From: Tetramitus jugosus
Taxonomy: Eukaryota; Protista; Heterolobosea
Direction: 5' to 3'
Assembly: GCA_937625935.1 (NCBI GenBank)
Contig: OW569387.1
Location: forward strand, 341,573-405,572
Length of the DNA: 64,000 nucleotides
Below are positions 35 to 64,000 of this stretch, piece after piece. The position numbers were made by a program, and so were the translations under genes. The number at the start of each line of letters is the position of its first letter. Positions within the stretch are counted from its first letter, which is position 1. The notes beneath the pieces are model-generated. The model did not search any database. It saw only the letters and a list, made by a program, of their open reading frames with translations, and was not told the DNA's origin.

Positions 35-1164
35 TGATGACAATGGATGAATCGGAAGAAACACTCTTGTTTGCCAATCATTTGATGAATCAGAGCTCAG
101 GTAGTAGTAGCTCTGGTGGTGGTGGTGGTAGAGGTTCGATGGGTGGTCGAAGTCATTCGAATGCTTCCTCGGACAGTGTCTCACTCACTCCACCAAAGCA
201 AGTACTGTACAGAAAGATGACTGATTCACAGATCAATGCCGTTGTCTTTTCATCAGATTCCATGATGATTGCTACGGCACACAATGACAAGACTGTGAAG
301 CTGTGGAACTCGAGAACAGGTACGATTACGACCACGTTGCACGGCAGTGCAGATGCAGTTGTCGCTGTGAGCATGTGCCCCAATCAGAGGTTGGTTGCAG
401 GCAGCAGCACAGACAACATTTGTCGTATATGGAGCATGGCAACAGCACGTGTGCAATACTCGCTCACTGGTCACACGAAAAAGATTTATGCCACAGATTT
501 TACAAATGACGGCAAGAGGTTGATCACTGGTAGTCACGATCGAACCATCAAGATTTGGGAACTGCAGTACGGTAACTGCGAAAAGACATTGTTGACATGC
601 AAGAGCAGTGTCAATGATTTGGAGTGTAACCCTGGAACACCCATTTTCATCTCTGGTCACTTTGATGCGTGTGCTCGATTGTGGGATCTGAGATCACCTT
701 ATACACTGGTCCACGAGTACAACACGATACACAAGCAACAAATTACATCGGTCAACTTCTCCAGGGACGGCAACACGTTGCTCACCAATGCACGAGACAA
801 TTTGCTGCAAGTGATTGATGTTCGTACGCACAAGATTCTGCACACACTGTCGCACGACGACTACAAGAACAATGTGAATCAAAATAAGGCTGTGATGAGT
901 CCATGTGGTTCCTATGCCATTGCAGGCACCAGTTCAACCAAGAATGTGTGTTACGTGTGGGACATTTCACCACGTTCTCTTGCCATGAGAATTGCTGCAT
1001 CTTCTTCTTCTTCTTCGTTTGGAAAGTCAACACCAATAGTCGTACCAAAGGCTGTGGCACTCGACGGTGGACACAAGCAGGCCATCACTGGTTGTGCATG
1101 GTCACCAGATGGAGCTCAAATTGCCAGTGTTTCCATTGATAAGCAACTTGTCGTCTATCAATAA
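1..1164 (+). CDS. ATG16: ATG16/TipD-like WD40 protein, C-terminal part (frame open from the window edge)
   Basis: About 7 WD40 repeats. ISGHFDACARLWDLRS and LLTNARDNLLQVIDVRT resemble the ATG16L1 propeller. Frame 1 has no stop from position 1, so the gene probably starts upstream of the window. Confidence 0.7.
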
Positions 1165-1707: not shown

Positions 1708-1767
1708 TATTTTGTTTTTTTGTTGTTTGAAGATCTATGAAGAAATGCAAGTGGAGGAGTTTTATTG

Positions 1768-4700
1768 TTACTGCTCTTGTTGGTTTTGTTTGCCTGTCAA
1801 GGATTGATGAATCATTTCAATATCGTGAGAGTTCTTGCTCTGTCTGTTGTCGACTTCTAGGTCCAGCTCGTCAATGGTTTCAAAGTCTTGTGGAGGAAGA
1901 TCGACAAAGGTTCCCGTCATGCTCGTGCCAGTGCTTTCATCGGATAGCTCCAGATCACCATTGTCTCTGTTTTTGGGGAAGAAGAAATCTCTGATGGAGA
2001 AACGTTTGGGATTTGAGCCAACGACTGGAGTTTGACTCGTATCAGAGGTTGTTCGAACAGCTCCACCAACCGTGTATTCTGCTTTGGTTCCAGTGAGAGC
2101 TGATGTTGAGGAGGTCTGCGTGGTGTGCATCGTGTTCTGGGCAATAGTCTTTCTTCTGTCCGTTGTAAAGTAGTCTTCTGGACTCAGTATCTTGCCGCTA
2201 GTAGATGTAGTTTTCTCTGGTGAGTCATAGCCAAAGATGATTCCGTTGTCGATGGGTTCGCTTGGAGGTGCGGACTCCCGTCTAACCAGACGCTTACCAT
2301 TGTTTGGTTTTGTTGAAATGATGATGGATGAAGCATTTTGAATCCGCTTCCCACCACCGCCTCTTAATGGTTTTACAATTTTTCTTTCTCTCCTTATTGG
2401 GTGAGGGCTGTCAGTGTACATGTCATCTTCACCGTACTCCACATGATCAAAATCATCATCACTATAATCGAAGGTGTGACTGGTGTTCACATCTCTGTGG
2501 AAAGTTGATTCAAACTCGTCTTCCATTCGTCTAATCACCTGGGTGAGCTTTTCAATCTCTAACTTCTGATTGTGAATTGTTTTGTTCTGGGTAGCTAGTT
2601 GTTCCTGATGTTTGTTTGCTTGCTCGTTGGTCTTGTTAATTAAATTCTTTAAATTTGTATCAAGGTTCGATATTCTATCATCCCGAATATTTAACTTGTT
2701 TTCCATTAGCTTGATTTGCAAATCCTTGTTATTTCTTTGTTGAGTAACGTCATGTAGTTGAGTTGTTGTTGCTTGAAGACTTCTCTGTAAGAATGCAATC
2801 TTGTCCAAATTCTTTTTGAGAGCAGAACTGTCGAAGAGCTGGTTGTGCTTGTCCCTAGCTTCATCAAGAAGCATCTCCAATTCAACAACTTTGTCACATC
2901 GGTTAGTTAGATCATTCATCAACGAGAGAATTTGTTTCTCATAAGTTTCTCTCTCCATAGCCATCCTCATATTAATCTTTTGGAGTTCATCTAACAACAG
3001 GACTGTATCATGAGTTTCTGCATTTGCACTTGCGTTGTTAGCTTTGATTCCAAAAGAAGCGGTTACATTTGTTAGGATTCTACTGAAGGTATTAGAAGAA
3101 GTTGCAGGAGATGATGTACTAGGCTCGAACGATTTTTGGGTTTTGGAGCTTGCTGTTCGTTTCTCACTATCAATGTTCTGAGCAACTGATGAGGTATCTG
3201 TCTCTGAACTCTCATCATTATTCTGTTCAATCAAAGAGATTTCTTCTCCAGTGACATCGTTCTTTCTGTCATCATTCTCATTCCAATCAGTGGTACTCTC
3301 ATTTTCTTCAGGTGCATCCAGGCACGATAACTTGTCCTTGAGCGATGAGATGGCTAGGGACATCTTTGCTTTTCTCTTCTGAAGAATTGAGATATCTTCA
3401 TCCTGGGTAGCAGCTTGCTGTTCCAAACTCTCAACAAGTTCGTTATGAGCATTGCTCATCACTTCAATGAAATCTTCAAGCTTTCGAATCTCTTGAGCCT
3501 TTGGGATTCTGTCAAGCTCTTCGATTTGGTTTTTGAGATCTGATACTTGTTGTTTCAAAATGTTCAAGTCCTTATTGGCAGTTTCATTTCTTATCTCCAA
3601 GTTTTCGATCGTAAAGTCTTTCTCTGTCGATTCATATTCGATCTTTTCTAACGACATTTTGAGTTCAGCTACCTCATTGGTTTTCATAGAGTTCATTGTT
3701 CGAAGATCGTTCATATAGCTATTTAAATCTCTTTCCACCTCTCGATAATATTCCATCTTTTCATCATATTCTTTGCTTAATTCGTTATATCGATTCTTAG
3801 CTTTCTCTTTCTCTTCATTCGCTTTCGCTAATTTATCTTTCTCTACTGCGATGTACTCTTCTAAGGATCGAATCTTTTCATCCAAATCTGGTCGACCCAC
3901 TGGAGTTTCGGTCTTTTCATTTTCATTGATCTTCTGTTTCTCTTCATCAGGTTCTTGTTGGGGCTCTACTTGGTCATTGATATCAATCTGCACCTTACCT
4001 CCGGTGTACTTCTTTAACTCTTTCTCTAATGCCAGAATGTACTTGTTGTTCTGAGCAATTTCAATCTTCGCCTTTTCTAATAACCGAGTTAGTTCCTTGA
4101 CGGATAATTCTCGGTTAACCTTTGGCTTATTCTTAATGCTCTTTGCTCTGATACCAAACCGTAGAGTTGATAGTGTTTCAAAATCATTGTATGTACTCGA
4201 AGAGCAATTAATTATCAACGTTGTTCTAGAATTTCCTCCAAGCGAATCCTGTAATAGTCGAGTTAGTTTGGAGTCTCGATAGGGAATGAATTTGGATTTA
4301 CCGTCAGTCAAAGCATTGATAACATTTCCGAGACACGAGAGAGACTTGTTAATGTTCTTTGCTTCTTCGAGCAGCTTACCAGCAGCACCTGTTTTCTTCA
4401 CCTTTTCCGAGCCAGCCAAGTCGACAAGAAACAACTTTCCAGATTTCGATTCGAGAGATACTGTATTCTTTTGAGATACAGTAACAATTAAGATACTGTG
4501 ACTGCGGGAAGACTCTTCGTTCATTCTTGTTGCAGATACGGTACGGTTCGCTGCTCCTTCTTTAATGAGTAGAAACACTTCGTCGGACGAGGTAACATAT
4601 TCTTCAGTGGCTCCTTGCACATAAATACCTCTCCCACTATCTCTATCCTCCTTGATTCTCAGATTCTGTTGGGTAGGGTCCAATAAATCTCGAATCTTCT

Positions 4701-9040: not shown

Positions 9041-9144
9041 TGACGGAAGTGGGGTTCGAACCCACGCCCTTTCGGAACACGGATCTTAACTCAACCTGAG
9101 TGTATTCCTAAACGTGTCGCCTTAGACCTCTCGGCCATTCCGCC
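9041..9144 (-). tRNA. tRNA-Leu(UAG) with a 24-nt canonical intron (about 9083-9106)
   Basis: Minus strand reads GGCGGAATGGCCGAGAGGTCTAAGGCGACACG-TTTAGG-[intron]-CCGTGT-TCCGAAAGGGC-GTGGGTTCGAACCCCAC-TTCCGTCA. Acceptor, D, anticodon, long variable and T arms all pair, and a TTTT tract follows. Confidence 0.92.
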
Positions 9145-55533: not shown

Positions 55534-56301
55534 ATGAAACAAGCAACCATTATTGTTGTACTGTTGTTTGTGCTATTCATCGTCAGTGATAGTTACTGCC
55601 GTAGTGAAAGAAGAAGAAGTAGAAGAGCTACCAATGCACTTGCTGACTCAAGACCAGCTGTCACAATGACAACGACATGTGAGAAGGCCATCCAAAACAA
55701 CCGTTTGCATGGAGCCACAGTGTATGAGAATCCAAGATACATGGGCTTTCTTCAAAGTCCTTGCAGAAACAAAGGAACACCTGGTTTTCTAACAAAGGAG
55801 GAAATTGCTCTCATTCATGCATACACTAATTTTGAGCACAGTTCCAATATTTTCATTGCATTGAACTGCTTCTTGAGATATAGAGGTTCTGTTGAAGTAC
55901 CTGGATGGGTGTACGATTTTACTGCAAGATTATCGCAAGTGATTGACAAGTTGGGAGAATATAATGATGTCGTCTGGAGAGGTACTGCATTGCATACGAA
56001 GCCACAGATGGGACAAGTAATTGAGAATTTGAGTTTTCTGAGTACTTCTTCAGATCGTCGAGCTGCACAGACATTCGCAGGTGGTCAATACTTATTGGCT
56101 TTCTATAATCATGGAGGAGCATCAGTTGCACAATACAGCTGTATGGACAATGAGAAGGAAGTTATTGTCAAGCCAAATCAATGCTGGAAAGTGTTCAATA
56201 TTGAAGAAGGCAAGCCAACAATTATCCATCTGGAACAAGTCTCCTGCAAGGGTAAATCCACTGAAGCTCTCTTGTCTGACAGATTTGTTGTTCATGGATA
56301 G
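55534..56301 (+). CDS. Secreted R-S-E clade mono-ADP-ribosyltransferase (ARTC/toxin-like)
   Basis: Signal peptide, polybasic RSERRRSRR, helical IHAYT...LNCFLR, catalytic VWRG, FLSTSS and NEKEVI (ExE). A-rich context before the ATG and AATAAA just after the stop. Confidence 0.85.
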   Translation: MKQATIIVVLLFVLFIVSDSYCRSERRRSRRATNALADSRPAVTMTTTCEKAIQNNRLHGATVYENPRYMGFLQSPCRNKGTPGFLTKEEIALIHAYTNFEHSSNIFIALNCFLRYRGSVEVPGWVYDFTARLSQVIDKLGEYNDVVWRGTALHTKPQMGQVIENLSFLSTSSDRRAAQTFAGGQYLLAFYNHGGASVAQYSCMDNEKEVIVKPNQCWKVFNIEEGKPTIIHLEQVSCKGKSTEALLSDRFVVHG

Positions 56302-61473: not shown

Positions 61474-61674
61474 CTATTTGAAGTAATCAGCTGGAATATA
61501 ATCCAAAATGTCGTTGTCTTTCATCCCTAATTTTTTGGCAGTATCACTACCAGAAATTCTGCGCCATTGTACGTGAATGTCCTCTCTTCGGCTCGTGGTA
61601 TTTGTTGCATCATACAGTACTTCATGTGTGATTGGACATAGAAATCCCTGTAAAGGTACATCAAAGTTGGTCAT
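61474..61674 (-). pseudogene. Short chimeric remnant: U-box start fused to a SUMO-like C-terminal half
   Basis: FLCPITHEV resembles a U-box start. TFTYNG/[fs]RRISGSDTAKKLGMKDNDILD resembles SUMO/SLD strands. Confidence 0.45.
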
Positions 61675-61686
61675 CTTTTGTGCAAG

Positions 61687-61709
61687 TTGGGTTGGGTTTG
61701 GGTTTGGGT
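61687..61709 (+). repeat. Interstitial telomere-like repeat
   Basis: TTGGG TTGGG TTTGGG TTTGGG T, in the same orientation as the telomere. Confidence 0.8.
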
Positions 61710-62141
61710 CTGTCTTGTTGTTAAGGAAAACCCGAGAATTTTGCTGTATTTGGTATCAGAGCGTTGAAATTTACAGTTTAGTGTAAAAAAAAAAAATTGA
61801 GTTCGGTTGAGTTGTGGCTTACAGGTTGAGGGAGTAAAAAGAAGACATATAGGACAAGAGCTGCATGACTTTTGGAGTCTATGATCAGATCGGAGATATT
61901 GAGGTTCAACGAACAGGGAGGTTCACGGTCCAGGACCGTGAAATGATTTCCTGAATTTCATCTCAGGTCATTTGTCAGTGGAGCTTTTTGGGATCCAGCA
62001 AAGAATTTCGACCAATGGGCGAAGTGATTGTAACGGATTAAGAAGGAATACAACGCACCAACATGAATATGACAGAAGACTTGTGAAGGAGTTCAACCTG
62101 AAATACAATGACAGTCAATAGTTAGCTATTTGTCTTGATCA

Positions 62142-62159
62142 TGGGTTTGGGTTTGGGTT
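62142..62159 (+). repeat. Interstitial telomere-like repeat
   Basis: TGGG TTTGGG TTTGGG TT, in the same orientation as the telomere. Confidence 0.75.
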
Positions 62160-62377
62160 GTCACATATCGGCTAGCCAAGACTGGCTGAATACAGTCAAC
62201 TGTACGTTGTAAAGGTTGTTTTTGTATTCTTTATGGTCTGAAATGTTCAACTTAAGCTTTGTGTGGAAAAACTCACTATAGATTGTGAACTAGCCCCCAA
62301 ACTGTGATATGGAGTTGGGTTTTGAACTCAGAAAACCCAAATCTCTATGAGCTATTGACTGATGAGTCGATAAAAAA

Positions 62378-62680
62378 TAGGCGGAACCAGCCATTTCGGC
62401 CTAGAAAAGCCTTTTTACAGAGGAACTCTCTGGTTCCGCCTAAAAGTTGGACTCACAAGCGGAACCAGCTGGTTCCGCCTAAAAGAGCTTTTTTTCAGAG
62501 GAACTATCTGGTTCCGCCTAAATTATCGACTTTACAGAGGAACCAGCTGGTTCCGCCTAAAACTTGCTTTGTCAGTGGAACTATCTGGTTCCGCCTGTAA
62601 TATGACTTTTTCAGTGGAACCAGCTGGTTCCGCCTAAACGCACACATGTCTAAGAGGAACCAGATAGTTCCGCATAAAAA
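62378..62680. repeat. Telomere-associated array of 8 palindromic ~39-bp units with variable spacers
   Basis: Cores start at 62383, 62422, 62461, 62500, 62539, 62577, 62616 and 62656. Consensus GGAAC-N6-GTTCCGCCTAAA followed by about 15-17 nt of variable sequence. Confidence 0.92.
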
Positions 62681-63150
62681 GATTTCTACAGAGAAACTTG
62701 TAACTGAGATCAGAAAGGTTCGGACATCTGAAGGAAGATACATTGTGACAGAGACGGTTGAACTGCAAGATTGAAGTCCTTCATAAATTGTTTGTAATGC
62801 TTAGTCGGTGAATACAATAGCCTGATGAATGCATTCTCGACTGGGAATGACATTGTCCAGTAACCGAAACGTGGGAAAAGGAAAAGACGAAGGACACGGC
62901 AGGAAATATTTTGTAACAAAGAATGATGAAGGAAGGTTCAACATGGATGAAGGAGTGTTGTTAGAATTACAATGAGAGTTTTGACATCGAGTGCAGAGAT
63001 GCATGGAGCAAATTGAGAGGAAGTTGTAACAAGTGTTAGGAAGAAGTATCAAGGAAGTGAGAACAAGATTACAATGGTGGACATTGTATTCCTGCATAAA
63101 AATTGATTTTGAGATGGTTTTGTGATTTTGGTGAGAAAATAGATTTTGAC

Positions 63151-64000
63151 TTGGGTTTGGGTTTGGGTTTGGGTTTGGGTTTGGGTTTGGGTTTGGGTTT
63201 GGGTTTGGGTTTGGGTTTGGGTTTGGGTTTGGGTTTGGGTTTGGGTTTGGGTTTGGGTTTGGGTTTGGGTTTGGGTTTGGGTTTGGGTTTGGGTTTGGGT
63301 TTGGGTTTGGGTTTGGGTTTGGGTTTGGGTTTGGGTTTGGGTTTGGGTTTGGGTTTGGGTTTGGGTTTGGGTTTGGGTTTGGGTTTGGGTTTGGGTTTGG
63401 GTTTGGGTTTGGGTTTGGGTTTGGGTTTGGGTTTGGGTTTGGGTTTGGGTTTGGGTTTGGGTTTGGGTTTGGGTTTGGGTTTGGGTTTGGGTTTGGGTTT
63501 GGGTTTGGGTTTGGGTTTGGGTTTGGGTTTGGGTTTGGGTTTGGGTTTGGGTTTGGGTTTGGGTTTGGGTTTGGGTTTGGGTTTGGGTTTGGGTTTGGGT
63601 TTGGGTTTGGGTTTGGGTTTGGGTTTGGGTTTGGGTTTGGGTTTGGGTTTGGGTTTGGGTTTGGGTTTGGGTTTGGGTTTGGGTTTGGGTTTGGGTTTGG
63701 GTTTGGGTTTGGGTTTGGGTTTGGGTTTGGGTTTGGGTTTGGGTTTGGGTTTGGGTTTGGGTTTGGGTTTGGGTTTGGGTTTGGGTTTGGGTTTGGGTTT
63801 GGGTTTGGGTTTGGGTTTGGGTTTGGGTTTGGGTTTGGGTTTGGGTTTGGGTTTGGGTTTGGGTTTGGGTTTGGGTTTGGGTTTGGGTTTGGGTTTGGGT
63901 TTGGGTTTGGGTTTGGGTTTGGGTTTGGGTTTGGGTTTGGGTTTGGGTTTGGGTTTGGGTTTGGGTTTGGGTTTGGGTTTGGGTTTGGGTTTGGGTTTGG
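63151..64000 (+). repeat. Telomere (TTTGGG)n
   Basis: About 850 bp of uninterrupted TTTGGG running to the window end, with the G-rich strand pointing 3' outward. Confidence 0.98.

Follow-up and report, generated by a model that had tools for sequence, protein, structure and literature searches.

A subtelomeric repeat element of Tetramitus jugosus containing an array of constrained dyad sites

Introduction

The stretch of DNA analysed here, called the window, comprises 64,000 nucleotides from the heterolobosean Tetramitus jugosus and runs into a telomere. About 0.5 kb before that telomere lies a row of short palindromes at regular intervals, separated by sequences of near-constant length. What kind of feature is this row, and what keeps its palindromes alike? 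An initial annotation, made from the letters alone, framed it as a CRISPR-like, telomere-associated array and offered three readings: an iterated platform for a dimeric protein, the subterminal repeats of a transposon, or a precursor cut into hairpin RNAs. Chromosome-end biology is essentially undescribed for heteroloboseans. Our literature search on Naegleria subtelomeric elements found no paper, and a search for the core sequences found none containing them.

Results

The window and its array

The window is the right end of contig 44 in a 26.35-Mb assembly of 56 contigs. It has a G+C content of about 42% and is gene-dense, with long uninterrupted open reading frames (ORFs) under the standard code. 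The genes neighbouring the array are of eukaryotic type and include a Ski2-like helicase, RCC1/EGF, ankyrin and F-box/LRR proteins, and an ART-like ORF. The last of these is an intact ORF of 255 aa at 55534-56301 (+) that matches the Pfam family ART (NAD:arginine ADP-ribosyltransferase) with E=1.8e-8; its exact sequence occurs on 3 contigs of JGI/IMG and Logan data. Ten proteins of the window were looked up by exact sequence, and none fell in a named cluster. A search of the whole window for known RNA families in Rfam returned nothing but one tRNA match of 104 nt at 9041-9144 (-), which is not reported by ARAGORN and presumably contains an intron.

Coordinates of the array, of the modules around it and of related arrays at other ends are collected in Table 1. 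Reading of the sequence and a pattern search agree on eight units, with core starts from 62383 (degenerate) to 62656 and periods of 39, 39, 39, 39, 38, 39 and 40, as the initial annotation had described them. Its other anatomical statements hold as well: the first unit, U0, is degenerate, the left edge of U0 mirrors the right arm of the core, and a perfect 20-mer palindrome is present at 62459-62478. Without extension, the core is a 16-bp dyad, GGAAC-N6-GTTCC, of 5-N6-5 form. Matches to GGAAC-N6-GTTCCGCC with at most 2 mismatches number 17 in the window, against 0.59 expected, and 0 shuffles reached 17.

Table 1. Coordinates of the chromosome-end features in the window and of related palindrome arrays at other ends
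Feature	Location	Strand	Remarks
Interstitial telomere tract, proximal edge of the duplicated terminal block	61687..61709	+	Tandem Repeats Finder (TRF); identity between the right ends of contigs 44 and 15 starts exactly here
Module A, subtelomeric block of ~430 bp	61710..62141	+	Occurs at ends with or without the array module
Second interstitial telomere tract, junction of module A and module B1	62142..62159	+	TRF
Module B1, non-coding terminal element of ~1 kb containing the array	62160..63150	+	84-100% identical copies at ~19 ends
Leader block with telomere-like inverted repeat	62305..62346	+	Nearly invariant among 16 ends; homologous block in sister module
U0, degenerate first unit	62378..62421	+	Core at 62383; left edge mirrors right arm and linker; same decayed form at all ends
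U1-U7, each core GGAAC-N6-GTTCC, linker GCCTAAA and spacer of 15-17 bp	62422..62694	+	
Starts of U1-U7	62422, 62461, 62500, 62539, 62577, 62616, 62656	+	
Variable tail, from array to telomere-adjacent block	62695..63074	+	40-76% of alignment columns vary among ends
Conserved telomere-adjacent segment of ~78 bp	63075..63150	+	Common to ends of all module types
Terminal telomere, (TTGGGT)n	63151..64000	+	G-rich strand 5' to 3' to the contig end; TRF: 141.7 copies, 100% matches
Sister array, core GGAGC-TCATGA-GCTCC	Contig 14 left end, piece 900-1135		Seven clean 38-bp units, 76-bp alternating pattern
Sister array	Contig 1 right end, piece 1726-1960		Partly decayed, 39-bp period
Sister array	Contig 46 right end, piece 1800-2010		Partly decayed, 39-bp period
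Third-form examples	Contig 2 right end, contig 39 left end, contig 38 left end; one piece 2800-3200		

Tandem Repeats Finder fits the array better with a 78-bp period (82% matches) than with a 39-bp period (68%), so the array is a series of alternating dimers, with centres CAGCTG and TATCTG. The centre of the last unit is inverted and reads CAGATA. The spacers, described at first as all different, do differ from one another, but they are related, with a mean pairwise identity of 0.61 against 0.50 +/- 0.02 for shuffles, and the same spacers recur at other ends. The closest pairs are U0/U2 (88%) and U4/U5 (81%). As a tandem repeat the array is old, and its units diverged before the module containing it spread.

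A reading of the 39-bp unit as a coding repeat, for which two frames are open and an ORF of 98 aa is found at 62304-62600, was rejected. This ORF lacks an ATG and ends at different places in different copies; its frame is shifted by a 1-bp indel in U4, and conservation ignores codon positions. In module B1 no ORF stays intact across the copies, which differ by frame-breaking indels of 1, 7 and 19 bp; the minus-strand ORF at 62801-63097, for example, is disrupted elsewhere by those of 19 and 7 bp.

A modular chromosome end

The motif TTTGGG has been proposed as a candidate telomere repeat for Naegleria gruberi (PMC3622300). In the window, short interstitial tracts of telomere repeat set off two modules, A and B1, on the way to the terminal telomere. 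With window positions 61700-63150 as the query, module A (query positions 1-444) finds matches of 85-99% identity at at least 15 other ends, and matches to module B1 all begin at query position ~443, directly after the tract at 62142-62159. A direct comparison of two loci, the right ends of contigs 44 and 15, finds them identical from the tract at 61687 outward and unrelated proximally. At the left end of contig 10, two B1 modules stand in tandem with a telomere tract between them; joints that lead from a module end to a module start also occur in contigs of independent runs. Telomere repeats are also found joined to broken units: at the left end of contig 10 the joint lies in the spacer of U6, and at the right end of contig 7 it lies within a core. 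These joints are healed terminal deletions within arrays, with new telomeres added.

The leader of module B1 contains two invariant runs, 62305-62325 and 62331-62346. At the distal end of the module, the segment of about 78 bp matches positions 584-661 of a query made from the module at the right end of contig 1; these positions match at least 25 ends at 79-89% identity, including contig 44 itself at 404647-404724. The segment at 63075-63150 may be a true universal telomere-adjacent sequence.

Several further observations concern module A and its proximal border. Contig 44 also carries module A internally, at 79077-79401, 79 kb from its left end; this copy is 95% identical over 331 bp. The module holds a perfect 21-bp palindrome at 61922-61942, with the core CGGTCCAGGACCG and TTCA/TGAA ends, which is kept in the copy on contig 2; its motif is unrelated to the array cores. 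Just proximal to the first interstitial tract, an ORF of 66 aa at 61474-61674 (-) has a U-box-like N-terminal motif and a start codon about 12 bp away from that tract, and is probably what remains of a gene cut short at an old break point.

Distribution over the genome and in other samples

The core with a GCC extension occurs at 101 sites in the genome, and at 0 for a reversed control. The 100 such sites that were listed all lie near contig ends, on 15 of the 56 contigs, and all are on the minus strand at left ends and on the plus strand at right ends. The association with telomeres claimed at first sight is confirmed by this search. Dropping the extension raises the count of GGAAC-N6-GTTCC to 136, with 17 for the reversed control. 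Internal sites are about as frequent as the control and their centres are unrelated, so the motif is specific to subtelomeres rather than a regulatory word of general use.

At about 19 ends, on 15 of the 56 contigs, the units U1-U7 recur in the same order, with 5-8 units per array. Variants have lost U2, U1-U2 or U4, or have a duplicated U1. Counted from match tables and from 34 ends read out of 112, the B1 family is carried by about 19 of the 112 ends, and by about 34 of the 112 when related palindrome families are included. The array is therefore not essential for every telomere, and its absence from most ends argues against an essential role in capping. It has the properties by which a subtelomeric element is recognised, namely presence at several ends, a fixed orientation, exchange between non-homologous ends and a variable number of repeats.

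The stretch of the window is also present in sequencing runs from a source labelled 'organism A' and from groundwater, soil, freshwater, biofilm and hot-spring metagenomes. Telomere repeat and sample types would suit a free-living heterolobosean amoeba. A pattern scan for arrays of the core in metagenomes, among which records of this genome and its close relatives may be lacking, returned only unrelated arrays, mostly of 22-bp period and with other centres (for example ATGAAT or GTTGAT), on contigs of about 41-46% G+C. These 22-bp-period arrays look like iterons of some replicon.

Constraint on the arms of the core

The initial annotation had taken conserved cores among diverged spacers as a sign of selection on phased sites, and had named equal substitution rates in spacers and cores, with spacers descended from one unit, as the marks of an ordinary minisatellite. 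Among comparisons of unit consensuses, the arms show 0 differences in 210, while the centre differs in 29%, the linker in 12% and the spacer in 49%. For the comparison across ends, 16 ends were aligned with MAFFT, and the motif was not used to pick units. Variable columns number 1/70 in arms, 5/42 in centres, 7/49 in linkers and 25/113 in spacers, with 53/230 in the 5' flank and 117/292 in the 3' flank; arms differ from spacers at p=4e-5, and spacers do not differ from the 5' flank, with the proviso that the ends are related through recent copying, so that column counts are not fully independent. If arms varied at the rate of spacers, about 15 of their columns should be variable, and 1 is. A neutral minisatellite should accept substitutions at an equal rate along its unit, and this array does not. 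The proposal of selection on phased sites is borne out by these comparisons; from the description of an ordinary minisatellite, the descent of the spacers from one unit stands and the equality of rates does not.

Differences within the array in contigs from groundwater, from soil and from a source labelled 'organism B' fall, among those listed, only in spacers and centres (62411, 62428, 62525, 62603, 62639 and an insertion after 62566) and never in arms; many of these are variants among paralogous ends and not independent events. No mirrored double change was seen within the arms of family B1, which indicates that the sequence of the arms is constrained and not their pairing alone. Decayed units are U0, everywhere, and several units at the right ends of contigs 1 and 46.

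Sister and third palindrome families

A second palindrome, GGAGC-N6-GCTCC, occurs at 43 sites in the genome against 2 for the control, and nearly all of these are subtelomeric. The module that contains it shares with B1 a homologous leader, the GCCTA linker, a related spacer and the telomere-adjacent segment of about 78 bp, and is accordingly a diverged paralogue of B1. In its leader, the inverted repeat is replaced by three or four tandem units of 12 bp (piece coordinates 1425-1495), which contain the C-strand telomere word and are inverted relative to the telomere.

Between the B1 and sister half-sites, 4 of 8 positions differ, and all 4 changes are mirrored in the other half, an outcome with a probability of about 3e-5 if the halves had evolved independently. 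The 146 sites found in 34 ends divide into 120 of the A/T type, 25 of the G/C type and 1 hybrid. The hybrid arrangement is seen in the last unit at the right end of contig 1, where a GGAAC arm is combined with a GCTCC arm.

A third form consists of GGTGGAGC and GCTCCACC around a 6-bp centre rich in T or A, with CTAAA after the second arm. It lies in repeats of 132-167 bp at about 9 further ends. A decayed copy of the third form is present in module A of the window, at about 61975-62000.

Alternative explanations of the dyads

An array can keep its cores alike for reasons other than protein binding. The array might be an ordinary, functionless subtelomeric minisatellite, its cores kept alike by concerted evolution and template switching at quasi-palindromes rather than by selection. 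Subtelomeric tandem repeats are commonplace, the number of units here varies through loss and duplication, the spacers descend from one unit, and the array is found only at a minority of ends. Template switching, moreover, makes mirrored changes in one step and would explain the difference between B1 and the sister family. Homogenisation, however, acts on whole units, and the spacers stay position-specific at all ends while arms are identical between unit consensuses, so that whole-unit homogenisation cannot explain the constancy of the arms; nor does the single variable arm column fit a neutral rate. Templated repair should also leave about half of the arm mutations in B1 as mirrored doubles, of which there are none. 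We consider this explanation unlikely.

The dyad might instead matter as a DNA structure, with hairpins or cruciforms that stall replication or provoke breaks and make the array either a self-spreading hot spot or an origin or fork barrier. The symmetry has survived four mirrored changes between families, and the stability of the single strand far exceeds that of shuffles (z=-10.3). Breakage within arrays is evident from the new telomeres at the left end of contig 10 and the right end of contig 7, and the many near-identical copies point to recent spread. On the other hand, arms of 5 bp around a 6-nt centre make very weak hairpins, non-palindromic centres such as TATCTG are stable, and the arm sequence within B1 is itself invariant. 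A constraint on structure only predicts that mirrored variants are tolerated within a family, and the lack of such compensatory variants in B1 argues against it. An explanation by structure is rather improbable on this balance.

It is very unlikely that the units serve a mobile element in cis, as subterminal repeats for an end-targeting transposase or as sites of a site-specific recombinase. Inverted half-sites flank a 6-bp centre, which lacks symmetry in every other unit and is inverted in the final one; in this the units do resemble recombinase cores, and the module boundaries are sharp. These boundaries, however, are telomere tracts; the module has no terminal inverted repeats or target duplications and no conserved ORF, and no copy lies away from the chromosome ends. 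A search of the whole genome with the recombinase profile PF00589 gave no match, a model that eukaryotic recombinases may escape. The suggestion of transposon subterminal repeats finds no support in this lack of dispersal and of a PF00589 match.

Scarcely credible, finally, is an array that is transcribed and cut into hairpin RNAs of about 39 nt, as a precursor of phased small RNAs, or one that serves as a true CRISPR-like memory: the spacing is regular and the cores are self-complementary, but the spacers are mutually homologous, descended from one unit and keep one order at about 19 ends, cores of the single strand pair with one another over long distances in place of unit hairpins, arm sequence is kept without compensatory or wobble changes, and the only Rfam match in the window is the tRNA. 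With CRISPR arrays the row shares regularly spaced, partly palindromic repeats at intervals of similar length, and differs in that its conserved part is the 5-N6-5 dyad and not the full repeat. It also lacks their context, with a eukaryotic telomere 0.5 kb away, eukaryote-type neighbouring genes and no cas genes. Both the CRISPR-like framing and the hairpin-RNA precursor of the initial annotation are set aside on these grounds.

Discussion

The array is a subtelomeric repeat element, an ordinary kind of feature, with a clear signature of constraint on its dyad sites. We read it, with about even confidence and from sequence comparison, as the constrained centre of a Y'-like terminal element of about 1 kb, whose dyad cores would be homodimer sites that together form a subtelomeric platform. 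Dyad cores at a fixed spacing between drifting linkers are what distinguishes an array of dimer sites, and they are what is found. In the 5-N6-5 geometry the centres of the half-sites are 11 bp apart, on one face of the helix; sites of like geometry are those of CAP (TGTGA-N6-TCACA) and of papillomavirus E2 (ACC-N6-GGT). Arms that are fixed within a family, together with both half-sites switched between families, favour a row of homodimer sites. Counting against a platform, some units are decayed, 39 bp does not correspond to an integral number of helical turns, and template-switch repair of quasi-palindromes could yield mirrored changes without selection.

The anatomy and distribution of the element, its orientation, its copying between ends, the uneven constraint and the mirrored half-site switch are observed; a bound protein and a platform role are what we infer, along the following lines. 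Module B1, placed between a short interstitial TTTGGG tract and the telomere, would spread from one chromosome end to another when recombination or break-induced copying sets out from the interstitial telomere tracts. The array within it is an old 39-bp tandem repeat, organised as 78-bp dimers, in which spacers drift and the GGAAC-N6-GTTCC cores would be held by selection. The most likely reason for that constraint would be a sequence-specific, homodimeric DNA-binding protein on each unit. Seven or eight such dimers could make a protein platform of about 300 bp, at 0.2-0.5 kb from the telomere. Its putative role in subtelomeric chromatin might be that of a boundary, or lie in silencing, in the clustering of ends or in control of transcription directed toward the telomere; alternatively, the platform could act as a fork barrier in the manner of the Epstein-Barr virus family of repeats.

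Two core families would imply two binding specificities. A further and quite doubtful step would be that chromosome ends carry a sequence code, in which arrays of GGAAC and GGAGC type have co-evolved with paralogous homodimeric subtelomere binders and sort the ends into classes, each of which clusters, recombines or is silenced as a group. If true, such a code would amount to a subtelomere system specific to this lineage, and nothing comparable is described in Heterolobosea. The presence of two core families in one genome is a natural experiment in any case. The arrays also offer a precise and cheap handle, since a 16-bp probe with an arm-mutated control could be used to fish for a subtelomere-binding factor, and arrays and modules together give a map of the exchange of material between ends through interstitial telomere tracts.

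Comparison with known systems

Among systems built from rows of binding sites, the family of repeats of Epstein-Barr virus oriP consists of 30-bp tandem units, each with a palindromic dimer site for EBNA1, and acts as a tether, enhancer and fork barrier. It resembles the B1 array in outline, with phased dyad sites, conserved cores, a short linker and one dimer for each unit (putative in B1). The viral repeats belong to an episome and are unrelated in sequence and context, and the analogy is one of architecture only.

Human subtelomeric 61-29-37-bp repeats are promoters of TERRA with CTCF sites. Like the B1 arrays, these repeats are short, arranged in tandem and oriented toward the telomere, from which they are no more than about 1 kb away; only some ends carry them, and a sequence-specific factor binds them (putative in B1). 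They differ as CpG-island promoters with shown transcription, whereas B1 lies in a region of about 42% G+C, and the motifs are unrelated.

In Plasmodium falciparum, the telomere-associated TARE repeats and arrays of the SPE2 motif have a counterpart of the proposed kind, in that SPE2 is bound by the ApiAP2 factor PfSIP2. SPE2 differs from the B1 core in being a direct bipartite repeat and not a palindrome, its arrays are much larger, and its binding is demonstrated. Both are short bipartite motifs at a fixed spacing, confined to subtelomeres in ordered blocks between the telomere and the first genes, and both would be platforms for one sequence-specific factor (putative in B1).

The closest parallel for the organisation of the ends is with the X and Y' elements of Saccharomyces cerevisiae, terminal modules that are copied between ends with short interstitial TG1-3 tracts as points of exchange. 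Module B1 has no sequence relationship to Y'; it is only about 1 kb long, non-coding and without a helicase ORF, and where the yeast conserved core is an ARS with Abf1, Tbf1 or Reb1 sites, the core of B1 is a 39-bp dyad array. In common with the yeast elements, the ends of T. jugosus are modular, with modules bounded and separated by telomere tracts, carried by a subset of ends in fixed orientation and in places as tandem copies, with protein-binding sites embedded in them (putative in B1), and with near-identical copies at different ends that arise by ectopic recombination or break-induced replication.
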